From Obrimoposthia wandeli (Eukaryota): a stretch of 64,000 bases of DNA. Both the position numbers and the translations under genes were made by a program. Location: positions 372,001 to 436,000 of the forward strand of contig CDROCS010002469.1 in NCBI GenBank assembly GCA_977020255.1, read 5' to 3'. Within the stretch, counting starts at the first letter, position 1. Each line of letters opens with the position of its first letter. Below are positions 9,980-46,699 of this stretch, one piece after another. The notes under the pieces were generated by a model. It searched no databases, was not told the origin of the DNA, and worked only from the letters and a program-made list of their open reading frames with translations.

Positions 9980-10657
9980 GTGAGTAATAAATTAACCAGC
10001 TTATTAGACAAGTTTGCAGTGCTAGGTAATCTAGAGCAAGCAGCAAAAGATATTTTGCAGCGTGATCTTATTTATATGAATGAGAATGCGGGTTGCCTAC
10101 TGTTCTCAGAAGGTAATATTTGTCATGGCTATGTACTATTGCTTTCAGGTACTGTTAAAGTACAAAAAATATCTGAGACAGGGCGTGAAATAGTCCTGTA
10201 TCGCGTTGAAGAACGTGAAACATGTATTATGACGACTAACTGCTTATTAGCCAACCATCATTACAGTGCGCAGGGAGTCGCCGAATCAGATATTGAGTTA
10301 GCTATCATCCCACAGCACTGTTTTGATGAATTATTAGGTATTTCTAAGCTATTCCGCACGTTTGTGTTTGAAGTTTATGCACAACGCATGTCAACACTTA
10401 TGATGTTAATTGAAGAAGTGGTTTTTAAAAAACTCGATGAGAGGCTCGCCAAAATTCTACTTGATAATGCAGTGGATTTTGAAATCACCCGAACTCACCA
10501 AGCGTTGGCCACTGAGCTTGGGACGGTACGTGAAGTGATTAGCCGGCAAATGAAAAACTTTGAGCGCCAAGGCTTAATTACGCTTAGCCGAGGGAAGATA
10601 AAAATATTATCTCCCATAGAGCTAGAGCGTTTTGCGCACTCCGGTAAAGATAACTAG
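9980..10657 (+). CDS. Crp/Fnr family transcriptional regulator
   Basis: AGGAGG SD with GTG start; cNMP-like domain (GREIVLYRV..ETC) and HTH (THQALATELGTVREVISR). Confidence 0.88.
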   Translation: MSNKLTSLLDKFAVLGNLEQAAKDILQRDLIYMNENAGCLLFSEGNICHGYVLLLSGTVKVQKISETGREIVLYRVEERETCIMTTNCLLANHHYSAQGVAESDIELAIIPQHCFDELLGISKLFRTFVFEVYAQRMSTLMMLIEEVVFKKLDERLAKILLDNAVDFEITRTHQALATELGTVREVISRQMKNFERQGLITLSRGKIKILSPIELERFAHSGKDN

Positions 10658-11682: not shown

Positions 11683-13464
11683 TTAAGATGAGCACTGCTT
11701 AGCATAACCTTGAATACGTGAGGATTGTTGCAGTGAGTAATAATTATCTATATGACTAATAACCATAGAATTACCTGCATAGCTTTTTGCTGCATGCTTC
11801 AAAGGTGATAATTGACTGGAGATTTCAAAGTGATTAAGATTGTCATCTTCTTTGATTTCTAAAGCCGCAATGGACACCGAAGCGATTTGATGAAACCTCT
11901 CAACGCCGTATCTATCTTTACTTGATATACCACCCGCTTTGAGGTGTTCAGGGTAATAAAGCGCTGCGACCATCGTATCAAAATGTTTAATCGCATCTTG
12001 GATACGTTGCTGCCAATTATCACTATTATAAATGGCAATAAAATCATCACCGCCAATGTGTCCTACTGTATCTTTTTCTATGTTGCAAAATTTTTGCAAA
12101 CTCAACCCTAAAGCCAAGATCACTTGGTCACCTTTAGCAAATCCATATACATCGTTATAAGGCTTAAAGTTATCTATATCAAAATGCACAACCGCAAACT
12201 CATTATTACTTTTCACTAGCTGATCAATACAATCATTAACTGGAATTAAGCCTGGTAATTGGGTCAAAGGATTGGCATATCTCGCTTGGTTTACTTGTAA
12301 TTCTGTTACTTGCTTTAATAAGTCAATAACATGCGCAATGCCTATGAACTTATCATCTTCGCAAATAACAAAGTCATCTTCTTGCTGATAACGGGCACGC
12401 GAAGTGACTAAACGACTGACCTGTTCGATACTCAAACTGGCATCTACAACTAAAGGAATAGATTCCATTACCACTTCACTCGCTTTCTTATTGGAATATA
12501 ATTCTCTACCAAATGGTTTGATTAGCTTACCTTGCAAATTTTCACGTGAAACTAAACCTAAAATACGTTGATTACTCAGAACGGCAATTGAGTTTATCGA
12601 AGGCTTATCTTGAAAAATTTCAGCTAACTGAGAGACAGTATGATTCACATCTACCGCTATTTTATGGACCGACAAGCTTTTAGCCCTCACCGTTTTACTC
12701 ACGATCTTTGGGCTTTCAGCATTAACATCGATTATTTGTAATTTTGTTGGTGGAGTAAGTTGTGGCCGACAAAAGTAGTATCCTTGGAAATAATCAATGC
12801 TCAATTTTGATAAGTACTGAAATTCTGATTCAGTCTCTACACCCTCAGCAATGACTTTGCATTGCATTGACTTTGCAATTTCGACAAAAGAGCGCACAAA
12901 CTCCTGTTTAATAAGATCTAAATCGATATCTTGAATGAAATGGCGGTCAATTTTTACAAATTCAGGCCGTGATTTTGACCACAATTGCAAAGAAGAATAA
13001 CCCGCACCTAAATCATCAAGCGCGATTGAAAGCCCCATCTTTTGATAGTGGCGTAGCGCATTCAATAAAGTAGCTTCATCGCTACAGGGAAACTGTTCTG
13101 TTAACTCGATAACAACTTGACTTGTAGCTAACCCATAGCTATCTAACAAACGTATCGTTTGCCCATTCTGATGACTGGCTTGCTCTAGAGATTCAGGTGA
13201 TATATTGATAAACAACTTGCCTGGTAACTGTTGCTTAACGAAGCCTAGTATCGATTTCTCCCGACACAAGGATTCAATTTCATTGAGCAAACCAAATTGA
13301 CGAGCGTATTCAAATAATTGATTAGGGGAATGAAGAGGGCTATTTGAAGGGCCTCGACTCAGCGCTTCATAAGCAAATATTTCGCCACTGTAGCGGTCAA
13401 ATATCGGTTGATACAAACTCGTAATTGCACCTGTTGCCAGTATTTTTTGTAGTTCTTCTAACAT
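11683..13464 (-). CDS. EAL-CBS-GGDEF c-di-GMP enzyme
   Basis: N-terminal EAL domain (YEALSRG, DDLGAGYSS, AEGVE, QGYY), central CBS-like pair, and C-terminal GGDEF domain with HIGGDDF. Confidence 0.88.
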   Translation of the reverse strand: MLEELQKILATGAITSLYQPIFDRYSGEIFAYEALSRGPSNSPLHSPNQLFEYARQFGLLNEIESLCREKSILGFVKQQLPGKLFINISPESLEQASHQNGQTIRLLDSYGLATSQVVIELTEQFPCSDEATLLNALRHYQKMGLSIALDDLGAGYSSLQLWSKSRPEFVKIDRHFIQDIDLDLIKQEFVRSFVEIAKSMQCKVIAEGVETESEFQYLSKLSIDYFQGYYFCRPQLTPPTKLQIIDVNAESPKIVSKTVRAKSLSVHKIAVDVNHTVSQLAEIFQDKPSINSIAVLSNQRILGLVSRENLQGKLIKPFGRELYSNKKASEVVMESIPLVVDASLSIEQVSRLVTSRARYQQEDDFVICEDDKFIGIAHVIDLLKQVTELQVNQARYANPLTQLPGLIPVNDCIDQLVKSNNEFAVVHFDIDNFKPYNDVYGFAKGDQVILALGLSLQKFCNIEKDTVGHIGGDDFIAIYNSDNWQQRIQDAIKHFDTMVAALYYPEHLKAGGISSKDRYGVERFHQIASVSIAALEIKEDDNLNHFEISSQLSPLKHAAKSYAGNSMVISHIDNYYSLQQSSRIQGYAKQCSS

Positions 13465-19259: not shown

Positions 19260-20204
19260 TTATAAGGTCAACAGAATGACCAATTTGTTATCATTTTTTG
19301 CTACTCCTCGATAACGTGTTTTCCTAAATCCGAACAAACATTTAATAATCCTAAATGGATGTTCAAAAACAGCACGCACACTCGCATTCATATATTCGAT
19401 TTTAATCACCACTTTATTGATCCTAGAGTGCTCTTTGAGCTTTTTTACCTTACTCGGCTGCTCTGCAATGTACCAATCTAGATGATGATCAGAAAATTCT
19501 TCCCGCTTTTTTGCACCTTTGTATCCAGAATCTGCAAGCACGTATTCTTCATCCCCATGAAGAATACTGTGTGCTTCATTAATGTCATGTTGATTTGCTG
19601 CGATTGTGGTTGTGGTAAAGCTATGCATAAGGCCCAAGTTTACATCAATCCAGATATGCGATTTTCAGGTCGCACTTCCAAAGTACCATTGATTTCCTTT
19701 TTTAGTTTGATGCATTTCTGGGTCTCACATACCTGATTTATTTTTAATTGAACAAAGAGCATTGATATTAGTGGCAACTATAGCGCTACCTTCTTTGAGT
19801 AAGATACCAGCCTCTTCAAGCCAATAATTAATGGCCTCAAAAATCTGACGACCTAACTCGTACCGCTCCAATAAGTGGATAAAGTTCAAAATGGTAGTGC
19901 GATCTGGAATAGCATTCTCGAAAGGAAGCTGAGCAAAGCGACGGATTGTGTTTGTTTCATAAAGGGCATCTTCGGTGGCTAAATCGCTTAAGTTATACCA
20001 CTGTTGGAGGCATTGAATACGTAACATTACACTTAAAGAATAAGGTAGGCGACCATTGCCTCGTTTTGGATAGTAAAATTCAATAATTTCCCCAAGCATT
20101 GCCCAAGGAACGAGTTCGGTCATTCGGCCAAGAAATTCTTCTTTATATGTTTAGTTCTGACTCTTTCTTTGTTTAATGTCGGCAAACCCTAACTGCAATT
20201 CCAT
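19260..20204 (-). pseudogene. IS5 transposase pseudogene
   Basis: One frame throughout: MELQLGFAD...LVPW...MLRIQCLQQWYNLSD...DPEMHQTKKGNQWYFG...ADSGY...EHPFRIIK. In-frame stops start at 20153, 19727 and 19667. The first catalytic Asp (VDAT) reads IVAT. Confidence 0.9.
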
Positions 20205-20339: not shown

Positions 20340-21488
20340 CTATTCAATCCCTGAATATCGAAATGCTTCTCTAGTGAAGGAATTCAGTTCAGAATTACTC
20401 ATTTTATTGTTAACAACAATAATTCTACCGAGATAGGTAAGCGGAACTTCTGATTGGCGTTTGTCTATATAAAATTTAATAGCTTCAGCTGTTGCAACAC
20501 CTAAATCATCACTCATTCTCATCGGTGTAGCATCTAATTCACCCGACTTTATTTTTTCAATTTCCTTAGCGGTCCCCCCCCAACCTGTGATAAATATCTC
20601 TGATGATTTTTTTGCTTTTACCAGCGCATCGACTGCTCCAATAGTCATTGCGGTATTGGCATTATGAATCATTTGAACCTCTGGAAAGTTATCGAGAAAT
20701 AACCTTGCACCATCAGCTCCTCCAAGTTTCTGGTATTGCCCAAAATGCTCATACATACTCAGCCAGCCAGCTTTTTCTTCCACACAATCAATAAAACCTT
20801 GAGAACGTTGTGTGTCTGTAATCCCCGGAATGCCTCTATTTACAGCAAAGTTTATATCTTCACCAAGGCGCTCTACGACGTAATTGCATAACACTTGTGC
20901 GCCCATAGAGCTTGAAAAATCAAACCATGCATCGGGCTGATATTCCCAGGTCGGATCCGGTGTGTGGAATGCCCAGATAAAGGTTTTAAATGTTTCTGAT
21001 GCTGCGAGTTTTTGAATATTGTCAGCTTGAAGAGCTAATTCAGATGGGCCGAAAATAACGAAATCATAGGGATTTTCAGCATTGAGAACCGTTTGTGTAT
21101 GTTGTGATTGTAATGAATGCTCTATCTGTTTAGAGGTATACTCATCAACTTCGAAAGGAAGTTCTAGTGCCGCTAGTCGTTTGTTCATTGCCGTGTAATT
21201 GCGGATCCAAAAGTCAGATATATCTGTACTTGGATAAATGACCGCGATACGAATTGGGGTCTTGACTGTTACATCTATCAGCGGTTCAGGGCTAGCGCTA
21301 ACAATCCCTTGAAACCTTTCTAATTTATCTTTATTTACTTGAGATTTAGAAAGCGAATTATTAGTTAAACCCTGTGCTTTACCATTAATAGAAGCGATCA
21401 TCAAAGCGAATATCAATGCAATAATAGAGATCGTATAGTTAAAACTAACCATGATTACACCACTGATAAATAGTTTCATAATGTTCAT
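20340..21488 (-). CDS. LuxP-like periplasmic binding protein (AI-2 receptor family)
   Basis: Segments PIRIAVIYP...SDFW.RN, ITGWGG, ELDATPMRMSDDLGVATAEAIK and C-terminal AFRYS are collinear with Vibrio LuxP (compared from memory). Hydrophobic N-terminal signal. Confidence 0.8.
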   Translation of the reverse strand: MNIMKLFISGVIMVSFNYTISIIALIFALMIASINGKAQGLTNNSLSKSQVNKDKLERFQGIVSASPEPLIDVTVKTPIRIAVIYPSTDISDFWIRNYTAMNKRLAALELPFEVDEYTSKQIEHSLQSQHTQTVLNAENPYDFVIFGPSELALQADNIQKLAASETFKTFIWAFHTPDPTWEYQPDAWFDFSSSMGAQVLCNYVVERLGEDINFAVNRGIPGITDTQRSQGFIDCVEEKAGWLSMYEHFGQYQKLGGADGARLFLDNFPEVQMIHNANTAMTIGAVDALVKAKKSSEIFITGWGGTAKEIEKIKSGELDATPMRMSDDLGVATAEAIKFYIDKRQSEVPLTYLGRIIVVNNKMSNSELNSFTREAFRYSGIE

Positions 21489-21528
21489 TTATCCTAGTAT
21501 AAACTAAATATTAAGTTAAGATAAAACA

Positions 21529-22650
21529 ATGATGAATAAATATTTTAGACATATAGTTACCGTATTTTCTTGTGCTTTTATTTCGTTCTCTTTTGCTGGT
21601 ACTCACTCTAATATCTTTCTTGAGTTTGCCCAAAAAAAAGTAGCTGAGGCGATCGAAAGCAATCGAATTTGGGACGGCCCGACTCAAGGACCTCGTCTGG
21701 AACATAACAAAAAACTTATTTTTATTGCGTCAGATCTTAGAAATGGTGGTGTCTATGGCGTTGCAAAAGGGATGTCTGAAGCTTTATCCAATTTTGATTG
21801 GCATTTAAGATTCATTGATGGTCGAGGTTCAAAAATTCGCCAAGGATCTGCATTAAGACAAGCCATTGGGTTTGAACCCGACGCTATTGTGCTGGGAGGC
21901 ATTGACGCCCTACACCACAAAGAAATTCTGAAACAGGCTCAAGACATGGGTATTGTTGTCATTGGGTGGCACGCATCAGAACTGGCAGGCGGTAATGACG
22001 AATTAGGTTTGTACACTAATATCACTACGGACCCTTTAGAAGTCGCAAAAGTTGCCGCATTACTAGCCATTGCAGACTCGAAAGGAAAGGCTAAAGTGAT
22101 CGTATTCAGTGACCCCAACTACAAAATTGCTTCCCTTAAAGCAAGTGTCATGGTCGAGACAATCAAACGCTGCACCTTATGTAGCGTATTAGAATTAAAA
22201 ACACTCCCGCTAGATAAGATTGCAGAGCAAACACCCAATACTTTTAAATATTTGTGGGAAACCTATGGCGAAGAAATCACTCATATCCTCACGATTAATG
22301 ATCTCTACATTGATTACGCCATACCTTCTTTAGAAGCCAGGTTGAAAGCAAAAAAAACAGTTCCAAGTAATATTTCAGCAGGCGATGGGAGCAAAGCGGC
22401 TTATAAACGAATTAACCAAAACTATTTTCAACTTGCCACTGTTCCCGAACCTCTCAACTTACACGGCTGGCAGATCATAGATGAACTCAACAGAGCATTT
22501 CATAAATACCCTCCCAGTGGATACTCAACACCTGTTCATTTGGTAGCACCAAACAATGTAGCTGAATTGACAAACCAAAAAGACACCGGCTTGTATGACC
22601 CTCATAATGGCTACCGAGAAGTGTATTTGAATATTTGGAAAGCGCAATGA
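21529..22650 (+). CDS. Periplasmic binding protein type 1 (RbsB/sugar-binding-like), sensor-associated
   Basis: Signal peptide and motifs WDGPTQGP, IFIASDLRNGGV, AIVLGGID and GWQIIDELNRAF. No ABC permease or ATPase nearby; the stop overlaps the next ATG (ATGA, 22647-22650). Confidence 0.8.
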   Translation: MMNKYFRHIVTVFSCAFISFSFAGTHSNIFLEFAQKKVAEAIESNRIWDGPTQGPRLEHNKKLIFIASDLRNGGVYGVAKGMSEALSNFDWHLRFIDGRGSKIRQGSALRQAIGFEPDAIVLGGIDALHHKEILKQAQDMGIVVIGWHASELAGGNDELGLYTNITTDPLEVAKVAALLAIADSKGKAKVIVFSDPNYKIASLKASVMVETIKRCTLCSVLELKTLPLDKIAEQTPNTFKYLWETYGEEITHILTINDLYIDYAIPSLEARLKAKKTVPSNISAGDGSKAAYKRINQNYFQLATVPEPLNLHGWQIIDELNRAFHKYPPSGYSTPVHLVAPNNVAELTNQKDTGLYDPHNGYREVYLNIWKAQ

Positions 22651-25106
22651 AACTAAACCAAATAACGATTATTCAACGGCTAATATTATCCAACTTACTT
22701 TCTTTGGTCATTGTAAGCTTGGCTATTTTTATAGTAATCCGATCACTCTACTACGTAGAGTCGACTCTAAAGACTCAAGCCTCCGAACATATAACCGTGT
22801 TAACAACCAGTTCCGATATTAGCCGACGAGTATTTAAGCTAACCTCTAGAGTAAAATTGTTAGAACAGACTTTTTTATTCAGTGAAACAACACTCTCTGA
22901 AGAAGCATTTTTCATCGACTTACAACTGCAAAAGCTACGAGAGCTGTCTACTAACCGAGACTTTTCTATCAAAATGGATACCTTTATCGAGAATTTTCAT
23001 CGTTTTTTAGGTAGCTCACTTTCATTGAATCGCATTCTTAAAAAAAGCCAGAAAATAGATAGTTTACTAGGTGAGCGAGTAGACCAGTTAGAATTTTATA
23101 TTGCCGAAAAGAAGCTACAACACCTCAACGATTCCGATTATACAGTTTACAATAACGATCTTGATTTAATCAGTATGCTGCGAGAAGCATTTCTAATGAC
23201 CGGTAAGATGGTTATTAATATTCACAGCCAAATAACACCAGAAACTGAAAAAATCCTTATCATAAAAGCGGAAAAAGAATTAGATATTTTCCTTTTACAT
23301 CTTGAAAACGTTGATATAAACACACCTCAAATTATTGATCAGAAAAAGCAAATAAAGCGAATCGTACGCCGCTATAATGCGGCATTAAGGCGTATTCGTG
23401 CCAACTTAGAGCAGCGTTGGTTAGTAATAGGTGCATTAGTGAACTCTCAAAATGAGCTCTTGGCTATGGTTGAACACACTGAAATACGCGTGCAAAAACA
23501 AGCGATAGAGCTTACTGAAAGTCTAAAAAAAGAAATAGAACAGTCGCGATTTAATGCAATAATCATCAGTATTCTAGCCTTTATTTTATCAGTCCTGCTG
23601 ATTAGTCTCGTGGTTAAGCGCCATATTCGAAAGCCTCTTGATGATCTTAAGAAAAGCTTTGAACACTTAGAGTCTGATGGGATAAACAAACCGATAAACC
23701 TGGGACGGACGGATGAATGGAGTCATATTGAAAACGCCTTTAATAAAATGACTCTTCGCCTCTCTGAGGCATATTTGGACCTCAATGATGAGAAGAAAAA
23801 TTTTGACTTCCTCGCTCACCATGACCCATTAACTGGATTGGCCAATCGACTTCTGGCCACTAAAAAACTCAATCAAAATATACTTGAAGCAAAAGCTAAA
23901 AACCTTTCGTTTTTGCTCATCTATTTAGATATTGATGAGTTTAAAACTATCAATGATTCTTTGGGACATAAATCAGGCGATAACCTACTAATAAACATAG
24001 CAAAAATACTTAAAGAACTGACCGCTGATATTGGATTTGTTGCCAGGATGGGCGGTGATGAATTCATGATTGTTGTGAGCGAAGACGCAAACTTAAAACG
24101 CGGAGAGCTTTTATCTGAGCGCATCAACAAAGCGCTTCGTAAACCTTATTATGTTGACGATAAAAATATATTTGTTTCCGCTAGTATTGGAGTTTGTCAG
24201 TTCCCATTACATGGGTCGGACGATGAAACACTCATTCGCAATGCAGATACCGCTATGTACCATGCTAAACGCAACGGGAAAGACCAATACCGTATCTATG
24301 CTGATAAAATGACTCTGGAGGTTACTGACTTAATTGAGACCAATATAGGGCTTCATCAAGCAATTAAAGATGATGAACTTGTAGTCTTTTTTCAACCTAA
24401 AGTAGACCTTCGTAGTCGAAAAGTATTAGGTGCAGAAGCTTTGGTTCGTTGGGAACATCCTAAGCTAGGGCTTCTACAACCAGCTGATTTCCTAGAAGTC
24501 GCGGAGAAAACCGACCTTATCATAGATATTGATAAATGGGTGTTTAAGAACGTAGCCAATTTGATTACTCAATGGCAACACGACGGAATAGATTTAGAGG
24601 GTATTGTTTTTGCCGTGAATTTTTCCGCGCGAATGTTCTATATGGCAGATCTGGCAGATCAACTTAAAACCATACTGGATGAAACACAATGCCAGCCACA
24701 TCAGCTTATACTAGAAATAACAGAAAGAGATATGATGCGTGACTTTGTAACATGCGTGAAAACTATTGAAACTCTTAGAGCGCAAGGTTATAAGATAGCG
24801 ATTGATGATTTTGGCACAGGGTATTCATCACTTTCAGTTCTAAAAAACCTTTCAGCAGATTACCTCAAGCTTGATCAAAGTTTTATACAAGATCTAGACT
24901 CATCCAAATTAGACTTTGAGATAACCAATGCAGTCCTCAAGCTTGCACAGATCTTAGGCTTATCTGTTATTGCCGAAGGCGTAGAAACACAAACCCATGT
25001 TGATACTCTATTACAGATTGGTTGTCAGCGCGCACAAGGATATTATTTCTCCAAACCCCTTTCAGTGGATCATTGGCTTAAGTATTTAAGAAATAATAGT
25101 TTTTAA
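22647..25106 (+). CDS. Membrane sensor with periplasmic helical domain, HAMP, GGDEF and EAL
   Basis: Two TM helices flank a long helical periplasmic region, followed by HAMP (KPLDDL...EWSHIENAFNKM) and RMGGDEF (no RxxD I-site). The EAL domain retains AEALVRW, LEITE, DDFGTGYSS, KLDQSF, AEGVE and QGYY. Confidence 0.9.
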   Translation: MKLNQITIIQRLILSNLLSLVIVSLAIFIVIRSLYYVESTLKTQASEHITVLTTSSDISRRVFKLTSRVKLLEQTFLFSETTLSEEAFFIDLQLQKLRELSTNRDFSIKMDTFIENFHRFLGSSLSLNRILKKSQKIDSLLGERVDQLEFYIAEKKLQHLNDSDYTVYNNDLDLISMLREAFLMTGKMVINIHSQITPETEKILIIKAEKELDIFLLHLENVDINTPQIIDQKKQIKRIVRRYNAALRRIRANLEQRWLVIGALVNSQNELLAMVEHTEIRVQKQAIELTESLKKEIEQSRFNAIIISILAFILSVLLISLVVKRHIRKPLDDLKKSFEHLESDGINKPINLGRTDEWSHIENAFNKMTLRLSEAYLDLNDEKKNFDFLAHHDPLTGLANRLLATKKLNQNILEAKAKNLSFLLIYLDIDEFKTINDSLGHKSGDNLLINIAKILKELTADIGFVARMGGDEFMIVVSEDANLKRGELLSERINKALRKPYYVDDKNIFVSASIGVCQFPLHGSDDETLIRNADTAMYHAKRNGKDQYRIYADKMTLEVTDLIETNIGLHQAIKDDELVVFFQPKVDLRSRKVLGAEALVRWEHPKLGLLQPADFLEVAEKTDLIIDIDKWVFKNVANLITQWQHDGIDLEGIVFAVNFSARMFYMADLADQLKTILDETQCQPHQLILEITERDMMRDFVTCVKTIETLRAQGYKIAIDDFGTGYSSLSVLKNLSADYLKLDQSFIQDLDSSKLDFEITNAVLKLAQILGLSVIAEGVETQTHVDTLLQIGCQRAQGYYFSKPLSVDHWLKYLRNNSF

Positions 25107-25337: not shown

Positions 25338-26327
25338 TTATTTATTTTCCTTATCCAGAGACATCCTAGATAATTCGGGCGCTAATCTTCGATCTTCGCG
25401 TGGCGACAAGCCAAAAACAGTATGATAGCGGCGAGAAAAATATTCAGGGGAGCGAAAACCGCAAGCCACTGCCACTTCAACAACGCTCATTTTAGTTTGC
25501 TTTAATAGCTGACGCGCACGCTCTAAGCGTAGTCGTAAATAGAAAGCGATTGGAGGTTCATGGCAATGTTTTTTAAATAGCCGTTCAAGTTTGCGTAACT
25601 CTATACCGCTCATTACTGCTAATTGGGTTGCTGACAACGGCTCTTCGACGTGCTGCTCCATTAAATCAATTACTTTGGCAACATCTTTATGGCGAATAGC
25701 TAAACGCTGTACCGTTTGTAGGCGTTGATACTGATTAGATTCTCGCATTGGATCATGCATAAAAGCGGCGCAAACCTGTTCTCTCAATGCTTTTCCATGC
25801 TGTCTTTGAATGAGGTGTAATGTCATATCCATTGCCGAAACCCCTCCGGCGCAAGTGATGCGCTTTTCATCTATTTGGTATAACTGCTCAGAAGTTTCAA
25901 GGTGCGCAAAACTCTCCTCAAAAGCGTGCTTTGCTTCCCAGTGCAAAGCAATACGATGCCCTTCAAGTAAATTGGCATGTGCCAGTGCATAACACCCGGT
26001 TTCTATCCCACCAAGCACTGAACCTTTACGGTCCATTTGCCGCAGCCAGTTGATTAAGCGTTTATCAATCGTTTGCTCAGGCTCAAAACTTGCACACACA
26101 AAAATAATTGAGAATTCATTGTCACTAGCGATGGCTGCTTCAGCTGCCACGGGGATACCGCTACTTGATGTAACCGCTTCCCCATCAATCGATAAAAAAT
26201 GCCAACTAAACAAAGCACCCGCAAAACGATTCACCACGCGCAAGGGTTCTAATGCACTAAATAATGACACCATCGAAAACCTAGGTTGCAATAAAAAAGC
26301 AATGCGCTCGGGTGGATTTGTGGTCAT
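25338..26327 (-). CDS. GlxA/CdhR-type AraC family regulator
   Basis: N-terminal DJ-1-like domain (FSMVSLFSALEPLR, TCAGG) and C-terminal AraC HTH (VAVACGFRSPEYFSRRY), next to carnitine-type genes. Confidence 0.85.
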   Translation of the reverse strand: MTTNPPERIAFLLQPRFSMVSLFSALEPLRVVNRFAGALFSWHFLSIDGEAVTSSSGIPVAAEAAIASDNEFSIIFVCASFEPEQTIDKRLINWLRQMDRKGSVLGGIETGCYALAHANLLEGHRIALHWEAKHAFEESFAHLETSEQLYQIDEKRITCAGGVSAMDMTLHLIQRQHGKALREQVCAAFMHDPMRESNQYQRLQTVQRLAIRHKDVAKVIDLMEQHVEEPLSATQLAVMSGIELRKLERLFKKHCHEPPIAFYLRLRLERARQLLKQTKMSVVEVAVACGFRSPEYFSRRYHTVFGLSPREDRRLAPELSRMSLDKENK

Positions 26328-26435
26328 TTATATTCCTTTATAGAATGCGCCTGTGGATGTTATAGGAATTATTTATGTAGGCTACCAACTATTAAAACAT
26401 TCAGAGATTGAGCGCTCTGAATTGATAAGAAAACC

Positions 26436-27224
26436 TTACTTTGCCTGCCACACGGGATCTCGCCCTTCACTGTAAGCTAAATTTCCTTCCTGCGCATCTT
26501 CACTGTGTAATACTTTAGGATAATTTTTTAGACCCCCGCTGCGTATATGTGCATAACCTTGTGCTACCGTCATCTCACTTGTGCTACGTACAATTTCTTT
26601 AACCGCAGCGATAGATAAAGGTGCATTGGCTACAATTGTCAGTGCTAATTCACGCGCGCATGCCATCAAATCAGCACTTTCTACTACACGATTAACCAGG
26701 CCCCAGCGCTGCGCTTCTATTGCATCCATTACTCGCCCTGTCATTAACAGCTCATTTGCAATAGCCATAGGTAAATGCTTAGGTAAACGAAGCACTCCAC
26801 CGCTATCTGATATTATCCCAAGCCCTACTTCAGGTAGCGAAAATTTAGCATGTTCAGCGCACACAATCATATCTGCTGCGAGTGCTAACTCAAAACCACC
26901 GCCTGCTGCATAGCCATTAACGGCGGCAATCACTGGCTTATCTAAATCAAATATTTCAGTTAATCCTGCAAATCCACCTAACCCGAAATCAGCATCCGCA
27001 GCCTCTCCTGCTGCAGCAGCTTTTAAATCCCAACCCGCTGAAAAAAATCGCTCTCCTGCACCCGTTATAATCGCAACACGTAATGTAGGATCATCACGAA
27101 ACGCCAAGAAAGCTTCGCCCATCGCAAAACTAGTCGGTGCATCAATTGCATTTGCTTTAGGCCGGTCTAAGGTGATTTCTAAAATAGCGCCATTGCGCAC
27201 AATATTCAAAGCTGTCGTTGTCAT
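26436..27224 (-). CDS. caiD: Carnitinyl-CoA dehydratase / crotonobetainyl-CoA hydratase
   Basis: Motifs [51 protein letters not shown] and RDPVW. Confidence 0.85.
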
Positions 27225-27269
27225 TTTATTTATTCCTTTAGAAACTAGCTGGCTGTGCTAAAAAATTAA

Positions 27270-29450
27270 TTATTGTAAAATACGGATATACGCATCTGCT
27301 GCATATGCGCCACTGCCTTTTGGTCCCACTATAAGTGGATTAATATCTAACTCTAACAAAGTTTCGCCATGTTGCTGTGCAAAATTCGCTACCGCCATAA
27401 CAGCATCAACACAGGCATCAATATCCCCTGGTTGCTGCCCTCTAAAACCTGTTAATAAGCCAGATAAGCGTAAGTTTAAAATGGCTTGATGAATACTTTC
27501 CTTATCGGTAGGCAGCAATAAATTTGCGCTATCTTTTAATAGTTCAACCATCACACCACCAGTGCCTATCACCAACGTTAAGCCGAATTGTGCTTCACGC
27601 GTCACACCTATAATTAATTCTCCAATGCTGTTTTTAAGCATTTTTTCAATTAGAAAACAATCACTTAAGTGCTGCATTCGTTTAAAAGCAGCGCTTACTT
27701 GCTGGGAATTTTGCAAATTTAACTGCACAGCGCCCAACTCTGTTTTATGCACAATGGTGCTGCTTAATGCTTTCATCACCACTGGATAGCCTAAACGCTC
27801 AGCACAATCAATAAGTTTAGTAATGTTGCTTAGCTGTTGATCTTGCTCATTCTCATCTACTGTTATCATCACTTTTTGTGCTGCGGGGATCGCTAGCCCA
27901 AAATTTGCTAATGTTTGCTTAGCTTGGTATTCATCAATGTTGCAGCTATCTTTCTCTGCTAGTATCGCGTCACCCAGCGATGATCGCAACAAAGGTTGAG
28001 GTAGTGGCTGTTGGTGTTTTTTACCTATTTTATAAGCTGCGCTAATCGCACAAAGGCAAGTATCTAAACCTATCATGGGTACTATATTGGCTGCGATACA
28101 GGCATCAATTGCTGTTTGCGGTAAACATTCAGCAAGGGATGCAACTAACACACCTTGATGACCTGTGGCTTGGCTAGCATTTACTAAGCCTTGCATCGCC
28201 ATATTCCAAGGACCTGGATCTGCACCGCTAAAACTTGGCCAATCTAATAACAGTAATGTTGCATCAAAGCCCGCTTGCATCATGGTTGTAAAAGTTGCAT
28301 TTAAGCGCGCTTGATCACCCCAAATAAAGGTGTGGTAATCCAAAGGATTATCAACGTTTACATATTCACTTAACGTTTCACGTACGGCTATTTGGTGTGT
28401 TTTAGATAGTTGAGGAAAGCTTAAATCGTGCTGCTCTATTAAATCAGCCATTGAGCCTGCTTCACCGCCGGAACAGCTCATTGAAGCGAGTTTATTACCG
28501 TTAAGCGAACCTGCTATACTGACAAATTTTAACGTTTCGATAAAAGCTTCTAACGTATAAACCCTAGCGATAGCTAAACGCTCGAACAAGGCTTCAAATA
28601 ATTGATCAGATCCTGTTAAAGAGCTAGTGTGGCTCATTGCTATTTTTGCCGCTGCTTCACTGCGGCCATTTTTGATGGCGACTATGGGTATTTTTTTGCG
28701 CATGGCGCGCCGGCACACCTGATCAAAGTGATGGATGTCGGTTAAGCCTTCTATATGTAACCCAATCGCACTTACCCGTGGGTCATCCAATAGAATATCA
28801 ATAACATCACTCACACCGACATTCGCTTGATTTCCCATGGTAAACATATACGCCAAAGGTAAACCACGCTTTTGCATGGTGATGTTCAAGCCGATATTAC
28901 CGCTTTGGGTAATAATAGCCACACCGCGCCCACTATCAGCATCCAGTGCTTTACAGCCATGTTGATCAGGCCAAAGTACTGCTTTATCTAAGCAATTTAA
29001 TATTCCGTAGCAGTTCGGGCCGATAATAGGCATTCTACCTGCCAATGCCACCAGCTGTTGTTGGCGAGCCGAACCTTCATCGCCGACTTCTGAAAAACCA
29101 GAGGCATGCAACACAGCTCCTCCACAGCCTAGCTCGTTTAACTGCTTTACTATGCTCATGGTTTTATCTGCATTAACCGCAACATAAGCAGCATCTGGAA
29201 CAGCAGGCAATTCTTGTAGGGATGTATAGCAACGCACACCTTCCATTTCAGTGCGCGTTGGGTGGATTGCCCAAATATCACCACTAAAGCCTAATTTTAA
29301 ACTTTCGCTGATGGCATACCTCGCACCTATGCCACCGATAACAACAATAGATTTAGGCTTAATCAGCCGTTCGAAACGGGCCTTGTCAAAGCTAGTGGTA
29401 GGACTAGGGGTATAGATAGGTGTTTGAGGTGCCAGGTTTTCAACATTCAT
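27270..29450 (-). CDS. ATP-grasp (NDP-forming) acyl-CoA synthetase, probable gamma-butyrobetaine-CoA ligase
   Basis: CoA-binding N-domain, IIGPNCYG, QSGN, SHTSSL (phospho-His) and ATP-grasp HKTELGAV...ELDINP. Substrate is inferred from context. Confidence 0.8.
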   Translation of the reverse strand: MNVENLAPQTPIYTPSPTTSFDKARFERLIKPKSIVVIGGIGARYAISESLKLGFSGDIWAIHPTRTEMEGVRCYTSLQELPAVPDAAYVAVNADKTMSIVKQLNELGCGGAVLHASGFSEVGDEGSARQQQLVALAGRMPIIGPNCYGILNCLDKAVLWPDQHGCKALDADSGRGVAIITQSGNIGLNITMQKRGLPLAYMFTMGNQANVGVSDVIDILLDDPRVSAIGLHIEGLTDIHHFDQVCRRAMRKKIPIVAIKNGRSEAAAKIAMSHTSSLTGSDQLFEALFERLAIARVYTLEAFIETLKFVSIAGSLNGNKLASMSCSGGEAGSMADLIEQHDLSFPQLSKTHQIAVRETLSEYVNVDNPLDYHTFIWGDQARLNATFTTMMQAGFDATLLLLDWPSFSGADPGPWNMAMQGLVNASQATGHQGVLVASLAECLPQTAIDACIAANIVPMIGLDTCLCAISAAYKIGKKHQQPLPQPLLRSSLGDAILAEKDSCNIDEYQAKQTLANFGLAIPAAQKVMITVDENEQDQQLSNITKLIDCAERLGYPVVMKALSSTIVHKTELGAVQLNLQNSQQVSAAFKRMQHLSDCFLIEKMLKNSIGELIIGVTREAQFGLTLVIGTGGVMVELLKDSANLLLPTDKESIHQAILNLRLSGLLTGFRGQQPGDIDACVDAVMAVANFAQQHGETLLELDINPLIVGPKGSGAYAADAYIRILQ

Positions 29451-29500
29451 CGAACTTTCCTTAAATAAAAGCTTCCTTAAATTTCAACTTAATCGCAATC

Positions 29501-30676
29501 TTAGCGAGTTTCTAATGGGCGCAACATCGCTCTAGAAATGATGTGTCGTTGAATTTCACTGGTGCCATCCCAAATGCGTTCCACTCTGTGATCTCGCCAT
29601 ATTCGCTCTAACGGCAGCTCATCCATTAGCCCCATACCGCCTAAAATCTGGATCGCTTCATCGGCGACAACCCCCAACATTTCTGTGGATTTCAGCTTCG
29701 CCATAGCTGCATCTGTATCACTCATTTGACCTTGATCTAACTTGTAAGCTGCAAACATGGTGAGTAACTCAGCACTTTTAAGCTCTAACGCCATATCTGC
29801 CAATTTAAAGGAAACACCTTGGAACTTACCGATTGTTTGTCCAAATTGTTTGCGCTCTGCCGCCCAACTTACTGCTATTTCAAGTGCTCTTTCTGCACGG
29901 CCTAAACACATAGCAGCAACAGATAAGCGGGTTCCTCCTAACCATTCATTGGCAACATCAAAGCCGTGGTCTTCTACACCCAGTATTTGTGATTGATGAA
30001 CACGACAATTATCAAAGTTTAAAATACAGTTTTGATACCCTCGATGGGAAACGCTGTTATAGCCTTTTTCAACGCTGAAACCAGCAGTACCCATATCAAC
30101 TAAGAAACTGGTGATTTTTTGTTTAGGGCCACGCGCTGTTTGCTCGGTGCCAGTGGTTGCAAATAAAATCACAAAGTCAGAAACATCCGCATGGCTGATA
30201 AAATGCTTACTACCATTAATGATAAAATGCTCACCATCGCCTCCCTCTTCGCGCTGGGCGCGACACTTCATAGAGCGCACATCAGAACCAGCTTCGGGCT
30301 CCGTTAGCGCTAAACAATCTACTTTTTCTCCACGGATAGTCGGTAATAAATACTTTTCACGCTGCTCCCCTTCACAGGCTAAAAGAATATTACTGGGCCT
30401 TGCAACAATGTACTGTAGCGCAAAGCTCGCTCTGCCTAGCTCTTTTTCCAATAAGCATAGTGTGACTGCATCTAGTCCGCCGCCGCCTAACTCTTCAGGC
30501 ATATTAGCCGCATATAGCCCGTAATCTAATGCCGCTTTTTTTATTTTTGCGTGTATTTCATCGCTGACAATACCCGTTTTTTCCACCTCATTTTCATAAG
30601 GATAAAGCTCACTCTCTACAAACGCCTTGACAGTGTCTATAATCATTTGCTGCTCGCTGTTTACCGAGAAATCCAT
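29501..30676 (-). CDS. Acyl-CoA dehydrogenase (probable gamma-butyrobetainyl-CoA dehydrogenase)
   Basis: Motifs LALTEPEAGSD, INGSKHFIS, RKQFGQTIG, GGMG and RIWDGTSEIQR. Confidence 0.88.
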   Translation of the reverse strand: MDFSVNSEQQMIIDTVKAFVESELYPYENEVEKTGIVSDEIHAKIKKAALDYGLYAANMPEELGGGGLDAVTLCLLEKELGRASFALQYIVARPSNILLACEGEQREKYLLPTIRGEKVDCLALTEPEAGSDVRSMKCRAQREEGGDGEHFIINGSKHFISHADVSDFVILFATTGTEQTARGPKQKITSFLVDMGTAGFSVEKGYNSVSHRGYQNCILNFDNCRVHQSQILGVEDHGFDVANEWLGGTRLSVAAMCLGRAERALEIAVSWAAERKQFGQTIGKFQGVSFKLADMALELKSAELLTMFAAYKLDQGQMSDTDAAMAKLKSTEMLGVVADEAIQILGGMGLMDELPLERIWRDHRVERIWDGTSEIQRHIISRAMLRPLETR

Positions 30677-45673: not shown

Positions 45674-46699
45674 TCACGCCAAGCTTTGGACACAGTTACG
45701 GCCACTATCTTTTGCCATATAAAGCGCTTTATCTGCCCTTTCTACTAAACTATGTAATAGCTCAGCCCCTTTAGATACAGACACTCCGAAAGAGGCTGTC
45801 ACTGGCGGTAATTTCTCACCTGTACGTTTATTGCTTAGTGAGATTTTTGCTAGTTTTACCCGTAATTTTTCAGCTACTTTTATCGCTTGCGACATATCAA
45901 GACTAGGGCACAATAATGCAAATTCTTCGCCACCAAAACGCACGGGAACTAATGGTTTTGGGCACTCTGATTTTAACAAACTACCGACAAATTTTAAGAC
46001 TTGATCACCCATTAAATGCCCATGAGTATCATTGAAAACTTTAAATTTATCGATATCCATCATAATTAGCGAAATTTCCGGCTGGTGCTGATTTCCCGTG
46101 AATTCATCATAAATAGATTCAAACACTCGACGATTGCTTAACCCAGTTAATGAATCCGTGTTGGCTTGCGCTTTACTTTCTTGCAGCTGTGCTTTTAAAG
46201 AATTAATCTCTGATTGCGCTGTGAGCATCTCCCCTTGAAAAGAATCATTTATCTTACACAAAGCATTAGCGTTTTCACTGAGTTCATTCAATAATTGTGA
46301 TTGATCATCCCCAAGTTCACAACTACCCAGGCTCACGATATTTTCACTTAATGCACTAGAAAAATCATTACTTTGCTTGGCTGTTTGATCAATCGATTCC
46401 GATAAATTCTCGACTAATGCATCAATAGCATGCTGGAAAACATCTCTACTTTCTTCCTCTTTTTCATCTTTTTGGATGATGTATTTTAACAGCAGGGATT
46501 CACTCATTTCAGGGGGACAAGTGCTAAACCTATCGATTACATAATCGAGTTCTGTGTTTAATTGCGGAAATTGATGAGAATAATAGCTATACCACAAAGT
46601 GAAATTAAAAGGGTTAGGTACAATGTTATGCTTAATCATTTTGGGAACAGCTTTGCGTAACAGTACTGCAGCTTTACTTGCATCTTCGGTAAAGATCAT
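45674..46699 (-). CDS. Cytoplasmic diguanylate cyclase (VdcA-like, coiled-coil plus GGEEF)
   Basis: N-terminal AVPKMIKHNIVPNPFNFTLWYSY, then DSLTGLSNRR, DIDKFK, RFGGEEF and ADKALYMAKDSGRN. Confidence 0.9.
   Translation of the reverse strand: MIFTEDASKAAVLLRKAVPKMIKHNIVPNPFNFTLWYSYYSHQFPQLNTELDYVIDRFSTCPPEMSESLLLKYIIQKDEKEEESRDVFQHAIDALVENLSESIDQTAKQSNDFSSALSENIVSLGSCELGDDQSQLLNELSENANALCKINDSFQGEMLTAQSEINSLKAQLQESKAQANTDSLTGLSNRRVFESIYDEFTGNQHQPEISLIMMDIDKFKVFNDTHGHLMGDQVLKFVGSLLKSECPKPLVPVRFGGEEFALLCPSLDMSQAIKVAEKLRVKLAKISLSNKRTGEKLPPVTASFGVSVSKGAELLHSLVERADKALYMAKDSGRNCVQSLA

Follow-up and report, generated by a model that had tools for sequence, protein, structure and literature searches.

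Does a LuxP-like binding protein that stands without LuxQ pass the quorum signal autoinducer 2 (AI-2) straight into cyclic diguanylate (c-di-GMP) turnover? The question is raised by three adjacent genes in a stretch of DNA from the Obrimoposthia wandeli assembly GCA_977020255.1 (contig CDROCS010002469.1, positions 372,001–436,000, forward strand). The whole stretch of 64,000 nt is referred to as the window, and its positions are used throughout. The three genes, called the triad below, occupy 20340–25106. The first encodes the LuxP-like periplasmic binding protein (20340–21488, minus strand, 382 aa for the longest open reading frame (ORF)), the second another periplasmic binding protein, PBP2 (21529–22650, plus strand, 373 aa), and the third a membrane HAMP–GGDEF–EAL enzyme (22647–25106, plus strand, 819 aa). 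A preliminary description of the locus had proposed that one or both binding proteins route an AI-2-like or sugar-like cue to the enzyme. The gene layout that it gave was borne out: the two binding-protein genes are divergent, with 40 bp between the starts of the longest ORFs (21488 and 21529), and the enzyme ATG (22647–22649) overlaps the PBP2 TGA (22648–22650) in an ATGA junction. This junction indicates translational coupling of the two plus-strand genes.

To find out how general the arrangement is, we used a scan with one genome per species, which yielded 437 loci with LuxP-like relatives, and the best 80 were analysed (L001–L080). The signalling-type loci among them (L001–L044) came from species-level genomes; 43 of the 44 were complete and one was cut by a contig end. 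All 43 complete loci, which were gammaproteobacterial, had the LuxP-like gene divergent from the PBP2–GGDEF/EAL pair, at protein identities down to 42–50%. The carriers were Vibrio, Grimontia, Enterovibrio, Marinomonas, Oceanobacter, Pontibacterium, and two uncultured Pseudomonadales. The LuxP-like gene also adjoined the pair in the cut locus. Clustering of all ORFs in the 44 loci left only the triad genes common to all, while the flanks varied by lineage. The start of the enzyme gene overlapped the PBP2 stop by 4 nt in 28 of the 43 loci and by 1 nt in 11 (about 39 in total). Neither in the window nor in the 44 signalling-type loci were the binding-protein genes accompanied by the BPD_transp_2 permease and ATP-binding cassette (ABC) ATPase genes of a CUT2 importer. 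Within the 64 kb of the window, tblastn with ABC ATPase, BPD_transp_2 (CUT2) permease, and LuxQ-periplasm queries gave no further match. The absence of permease, ATPase, and luxQ genes from the window, as first described, thus stands; that of luxS and lsr was followed in part, LuxS not being among the 23 other annotated ORFs in a scan of about half of the window ORFs. A binding-protein gene coupled to a membrane GGDEF–EAL gene, with no transporter genes alongside, is the arrangement of the NspS–MbaA kind. The triad is a real, conserved sensory module and its arrangement is not due to chance; the lack of conserved linkage that had been named as a ground for giving up the proposal did not appear. 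One locus carried an addition: in Marinomonas sargassi (L013:438-5779), a tandem second GGDEF–EAL sensor gene lies beside the triad with no extra binding-protein genes, and its product is 60% identical overall and 47% identical in the periplasmic domain.

The same layout bears on the question of whether both binding proteins belong to the unit. Translational coupling to the enzyme is confined to PBP2, and the LuxP-like gene lies on the other strand. PBP2 might therefore be the sole partner of the enzyme, the LuxP-like protein being an independent orphan (e.g., the binding protein of a chemoreceptor or of a distant transporter) that merely shares the control region. This is the likeliest of the alternatives, but we consider it rather unlikely. 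It does not account for the adjacency of the LuxP-like gene, which every signalling locus (the 43 and the contig-cut one) has preserved in at least six genera despite changes in the outer flanks. Linkage of the two binding proteins is, moreover, seen in most of the importer-type loci discussed below.

The identity of the LuxP-like protein bears on whether AI-2 is a plausible cue. The protein has a Peripla_BP_4 fold by Pfam, and LuxP was by far its closest solved structure (E = 1.7e-38; 1zhh, 1jx6, 2hj9, and 4yp9; residues 62–379), followed by ribose-binding protein at 8e-09. The identity to LuxP was about 30% over 318 residues. The comparison covered the nine residues through which V. harveyi LuxP contacts AI-2, taken here to be those of the 1JX6 work, their numbering being consistent with the chain offsets of the alignment. 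The aligned pairs, with the LuxP residue given first, were Q77/D89, S79/S91, W82/W94, N159/A173, R215/R228, S265/N278, T266/T279, W289/W303, and R310/R324. Six of the nine contacts are thus kept, including the borate-holding R215 and R310, and all nine residues of the window protein are invariant in its clade. The carriers are, in addition, all marine, where borate is abundant. These observations would suit a protein that binds AI-2, a furanosyl borate diester, and conveys the quorum signal directly to c-di-GMP turnover through the GGDEF–EAL enzyme. We nevertheless regard that reading as quite improbable, on the basis of the remaining pocket positions, the family tree, the gene neighborhoods of the orthologues, and the type of sensor involved.

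As for the pocket, three positions differ (Q77D, N159A, and S265N). Searched exhaustively, a set of 1.84 billion cluster representatives yielded 341 relatives, and the pockets of the full-length ones were compared. The pattern Q-S-W-N-R-[S/A/T]-T-W-R was seen in 34 divergent representatives of the true LuxP clade, whereas every member of the window clade reads D-S-W-A-R-N-T-W-R. Among 47 divergent representatives of the LuxP clade, Q77 was present in most and N159 in nearly all. The Asp at position 77 is the state of the distant sugar-binding relatives, which mostly have D there. In a family tree obtained by a quick IQ-TREE search with a midpoint root, a branch with an SH-aLRT support of 100 and a length of 0.82 separated the Q-type clade (47 rows) from the side that holds the window clade. 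The latter grouped with the sequences P0121 and P0122 (support 99), outside the LuxP clade. Since the first binding protein lies outside that clade and lacks two near-universal LuxP pocket residues, it is, as judged by tree and pocket, a sister of LuxP and not a LuxP. By the same comparison, the LuxP-sister clade comprises the closest non-AI-2 relatives of LuxP.

The gene neighborhoods of the orthologues pointed in the same direction. The other 36 loci (L045–L080) are of the importer type and come from Roseobacter-group genera, Hoeflea, Rhizobiaceae, Nitratireductor, and a few Granulosicoccaceae, that is, mostly from marine alphaproteobacteria. Here, the LuxP-like orthologue (50–57% identical) agrees in all nine pocket residues and is encoded by the third gene of an ATPase–permease–binding protein set, as expected for the binding protein of a CUT2 importer. 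In most of these loci, a second such set lies directly upstream, and its binding protein is the PBP2 orthologue (36–40% identical). A LacI-family regulator gene is divergent from the tandem importer genes. L045:1-8017, like most of L045–L080, thus holds two tandem CUT2-type ABC importers under one divergent LacI regulator, each with its own binding protein; one importer has a double-domain ATPase and the other a single-domain ATPase of 266 aa. An SMP-30-type lactonase gene was found in 12 of the 36 loci. Other downstream genes, present in some loci, encode short-chain (SDR), zinc (Zn-ADH), 2-hydroxyacid, and aldehyde (ALDH) dehydrogenases, an enolase-superfamily enzyme, and a DHDPS-family enzyme. 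A lactonase together with a set of dehydrogenases is the usual kit for the oxidation of an aldose or polyol through a lactone. The catabolic genes vary between genomes, and they therefore point to this ligand class and not to one compound. D-apiose was considered on account of a PdxA-like gene beside a Ruegeria importer, a possible mark of D-apiose catabolism, and was dropped; the gene occurred in only 5 of the 36 loci, and the ApnO paper (PMC13753588) gives that enzyme a KARI-like fold.

No Lsr-type kinase was seen among the neighbors of the importer-linked orthologues. Proteins with a pocket identical to that of the window protein thus serve LacI-controlled ABC importers, often beside lactonase and dehydrogenase genes, which argues against AI-2 as their ligand. 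The assignment of the window protein as an AI-2 receptor, made in the preliminary description, is left unsupported by the three substitutions, the tree, and these orthologues. Among the nearest outgroups, P0121, P0122, and P0124 adjoin BPD_transp_2 permeases, and P0121 and P0124 also single-domain ABC ATPases, so the importer context extends to them in part. The signalling clade is monophyletic (SH-aLRT 99) and nested among importer-linked lineages. This nesting makes importer service the likely ancestral state.

True LuxP-type proteins do appear to be wired to c-di-GMP elsewhere, in a different way. P0130 and P0132 have Q-type pockets (QSWNRSTWR and QSWNRTTWR), and each is followed on the same strand by a gene for a LuxQ-periplasm–GGDEF–EAL protein (L084:2435-5505, 635 aa, and L088:5001-8837, 912 aa, the latter with an additional PAS domain). 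In these metagenomic bacteria, LuxP looks to be genuinely wired to c-di-GMP by way of the LuxQ-type domain. We found no description of LuxP next to such enzymes in the literature searched. A 2016 survey of Cache domains counted one cyclase/phosphodiesterase among 115 LuxQ-periplasm proteins. According to a 2025 paper, no LuxP-type AI-2 receptor other than LuxP itself has been identified in Vibrio; the link between AI-2 and c-di-GMP treated there, in V. furnissii, concerns a dCache kinase. The idea of LuxP feeding c-di-GMP holds for these loci, with their LuxQ-periplasm domain, and is not supported for the window protein, which falls outside the LuxP clade and has no LuxQ-periplasm partner.

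PBP2 had been described as an RbsB-type protein, and the assignment to Peripla_BP_4 by Pfam and the AlphaFold model (pLDDT 89.7) agree with this. Ribose-, galactofuranose-, and arabinose-binding proteins were the best Foldseek matches of the model (TM 0.8); at 13–20% identity, they give no clue to the ligand. A comparison of PBP2 with solved structures by sequence yielded no match. PBP2 has 79 residues that do not vary among the signalling loci. For 58 of these, the residue is retained in at least 90% of the orthologues linked to importers, and this set includes the loop motifs that usually contact the sugar. Taken together with the identical pocket of the LuxP-like protein, this retention suggests that both binding proteins seem to have kept their ligands on the move from transport to signalling. 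The triad would thus most likely sense a sugar-like nutrient and not the quorum signal AI-2.

The enzyme has the features expected of a c-di-GMP sensor protein. Transmembrane helices TM1 (aa 8–33) and TM2 (aa 303–323) enclose a periplasmic domain at about aa 35–300 (22749–23546, plus strand). They are followed on the same strand by the HAMP linker (23619–23798, about aa 325–384), the GGDEF domain (23826–24296), and the EAL domain (24363–25070). Pfam matches were strong for GGDEF (4.8e-43) and EAL (1e-73), and weak, below the cut-off, for HAMP (E = 0.0011). For the linker, the N-terminal profile of the enzyme also matched the TM2–HAMP part of NarQ in the Protein Data Bank (PDB; E = 1e-05), and the model showed a helix–loop–helix. 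The GGDEF motif (aa 469–473) is intact, and so are the EAL, N, E, DDFGTG, KLD, EGVE, and QG motifs of the EAL domain. No RxxD I-site precedes GGDEF in the translation of the enzyme. Apart from the weak HAMP match, the two-TM/HAMP/GGDEF/EAL architecture read earlier, with intact catalytic motifs and without an I-site, was recovered in full. Across 45 orthologues, no catalytic motif of either domain varies, and the enzyme is therefore probably bifunctional (diguanylate cyclase and phosphodiesterase), as are MbaA and ScrC.

What the periplasmic domain is could be approached only by fold comparison, as the sequence searches were uninformative. No Pfam entry, including LuxQ-periplasm, matched it at E values up to 10; the PDB profile search of the sensor region gave nothing beyond TM2–HAMP; and no sequence similarity to TorS or TorT was detectable. 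Residues 1–385 were modeled with AlphaFold on an alignment of 29 orthologues. The model (mean pLDDT 79.7) contained helices only, and Foldseek ranked the sensor domains of PilJ, TorS, and McpS at the top. VIA-align yielded Z values of 16.6–17.0 across TorS (3o1i, 3o1h, and 3i9y) and McpS (2yfb and 2yfa), covering model residues 46–290. The TorS sensor from the complex with TorT (3o1i_B) gave Z = 17.0 over 230 residues, and the McpS ligand-binding domain (2yfb_B) gave Z = 17.0 over 226 residues with an rmsd of 2.8. The level quoted for unrelated helical bundles is about 13–14. The model shows the two stacked bundles of long helices between TM1 and TM2 that characterize the TorS type. Because the fold matches exceed the level of unrelated bundles, the modeled domain is a helical bimodular (HBM) sensor of the TorS/McpS type, and not the double-PAS LuxQ-periplasm domain. 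The LuxP-to-c-di-GMP systems described above use the latter domain, and its absence here is a further point against AI-2 as the input. The periplasmic domain is nearly as conserved as the catalytic part (e.g., 74% vs. 80% in L001). Its many invariant polar residues and the McpS match would also fit a domain that recognizes a small ligand directly, in the manner of McpS with malate, succinate, or acetate, so that the binding proteins would be no input at all. This alternative is very unlikely, as the TorS match to a binding-protein-dependent sensor is equally good and the persistent tie of two transporter-less binding-protein genes to the sensor gene, with the start/stop overlap, would be left unexplained.

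With these results in hand, we favor, at somewhat better than even confidence, a reading in which two importer binding proteins were recruited as sensors for a bifunctional c-di-GMP enzyme, forming a self-contained three-gene sensory module. Each periplasmic binding protein would bind a sugar-like small molecule, and one or both would dock on the TorS/McpS-type helical domain of the dimeric membrane enzyme. The signal, passing through TM2 and the HAMP linker, would shift the balance between the diguanylate cyclase (GGDEF) and the phosphodiesterase (EAL). The c-di-GMP level set in this way would govern the choice between attached and motile life. Both binding proteins would descend from those of two neighboring ABC sugar importers, a tandem arrangement that would have survived mainly in marine alphaproteobacteria.

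The recruitment reading has several points against it. Docking is argued from gene linkage and fold analogy; we likewise infer the stoichiometry, which protein docks, what it binds, and whether c-di-GMP rises or falls. The LuxP-like gene is divergently transcribed and could serve another partner. The binding proteins might have an accessory role, given that HBM domains such as that of McpS are direct receptors of small acids. The catabolic genes beside the importer-linked orthologues differ from genome to genome, and the origin is read from a quick, midpoint-rooted tree. Of the input from binding protein to c-di-GMP proposed in the preliminary description, the general route is supported by the conserved unit without a transporter, the TorS-type domain, and the intact GGDEF–EAL enzyme. 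Its autoinducer part is not supported, and the input from two binding proteins is suggested by gene linkage.

A more speculative extension concerns the retained arginines. The borate-holding residues may have been kept because the ligand of the LuxP sister is a borate-complexed or anionic furanose-type nutrient of seawater. If so, the recognition of AI-2 by LuxP would have arisen from an importer binding protein for a nutrient of this kind, and the triad would be a dual-input switch, its two binding proteins pushing the enzyme in opposite directions. We give this idea only a slight chance.

Known systems offer partial counterparts to the recruitment reading. A 2021 review (PMC8050422) lists only NspS–MbaA and ScrB–ScrC as binding-protein-stimulated GGDEF/EAL enzymes; there, binding proteins for polyamines (SBP_bac_8 type) and amino acids (SBP_bac_3 type) are paired with dCache-like sensors. 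The same review describes TorT–TorS as a binding protein acting on an HBM-like kinase sensor, with TorT, a Peripla_BP_1 protein, binding trimethylamine N-oxide (TMAO). The triad resembles NspS–MbaA of Vibrio cholerae and ScrB–ScrC of V. parahaemolyticus in that a transporter-less binding-protein gene is co-transcribed with the adjoining gene of a two-TM GGDEF–EAL protein, both motifs are kept, and the output is c-di-GMP. It differs in that its binding proteins are of the sugar-type Peripla_BP_4 family and two in number, and in that the sensor is a helical TorS/McpS-type bundle with a HAMP linker. With TorT–TorS it shares an orphan binding protein that docks on an all-helical bimodular sensor, docking being assumed here by analogy. 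TorS, however, is a histidine kinase, whereas the output of the triad is GGDEF–EAL, and the binding proteins of the triad are of the Peripla_BP_4 type. The chemoreceptor Trg is a single membrane receptor with input from two sugar-type binding proteins, the ribose- and galactose-binding proteins. In that case, the binding proteins also serve their own importers, their genes are unlinked to trg, and the output is chemotaxis and not c-di-GMP. In the literature covered, which left most subscription journals outside its scope, we found no description of this LuxP-sister clade, of the triad, or of a sugar-type binding protein with a GGDEF–EAL partner.

The exact start of the LuxP-like gene affects the size of the divergent control region. 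The candidates, Met1, Met4, and Met13, lie within 21452–21488. Homologues align only from Met13 onwards, so the true start may be Met13 at 21452; the control region (21453–21528) would then measure 76 bp instead of 40 bp. The Met13 start would give a signal peptide without a basic residue. A candidate sigma-70-like site for the plus-strand operon (ATTACA-17-CATAAT) was located at 21454–21482, and it would fall wholly within the intergenic gap if the Met13 start is correct. The site is a candidate only, since the consensus scan gave fewer sites than shuffled sequences.

The immediate neighbors of the triad are unrelated to it: a broken IS5-family transposase, a PQQ-dependent dehydrogenase, a sulfatase, and a GbdR-like regulator with carnitine-type CoA genes. 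The transposase gene (19260–20123, minus strand) lies directly downstream of the LuxP-like gene and is split into two ORFs (a 131 aa N-terminal part and a 124 aa C-terminal part), so that a decayed insertion sequence borders the triad. The flank at 25338–30676 (minus strand) contains genes for the GbdR-like AraC regulator, a crotonobetainyl-CoA hydratase-like protein, an ADP-forming CoA ligase-like protein, and an acyl-CoA dehydrogenase. Further c-di-GMP genes are present in the window: one at 11683–13464 (minus strand), with an N-terminal EAL domain and a partial C-terminal GGDEF match, and a 341-aa ORF with GGDEF similarity at 45674–46699 (minus strand). A CRP-like regulator is encoded at 9980–10657. 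In a search of sequencing runs, near-identical DNA came mainly from a single 2025 run of this organism, and partial matches appeared in ice and seawater metagenomes.

For the biology of these bacteria, the triad would add a widespread sugar-type example of a binding-protein-controlled c-di-GMP enzyme, found in marine Vibrionaceae and Marinomonas. It would also add a different, TorS-like docking domain and possibly two inputs to one enzyme, and would represent a case in which an importer binding-protein pair was re-used as sensors. In many databases, the clade goes under the name ‘autoinducer 2-binding protein LuxP’, and AI-2 sensing may therefore be overstated in surveys of marine samples that tally LuxP homologs. 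With the LuxP-sister clade as the nearest non-AI-2 relatives of LuxP, the origin of AI-2 recognition would become testable.

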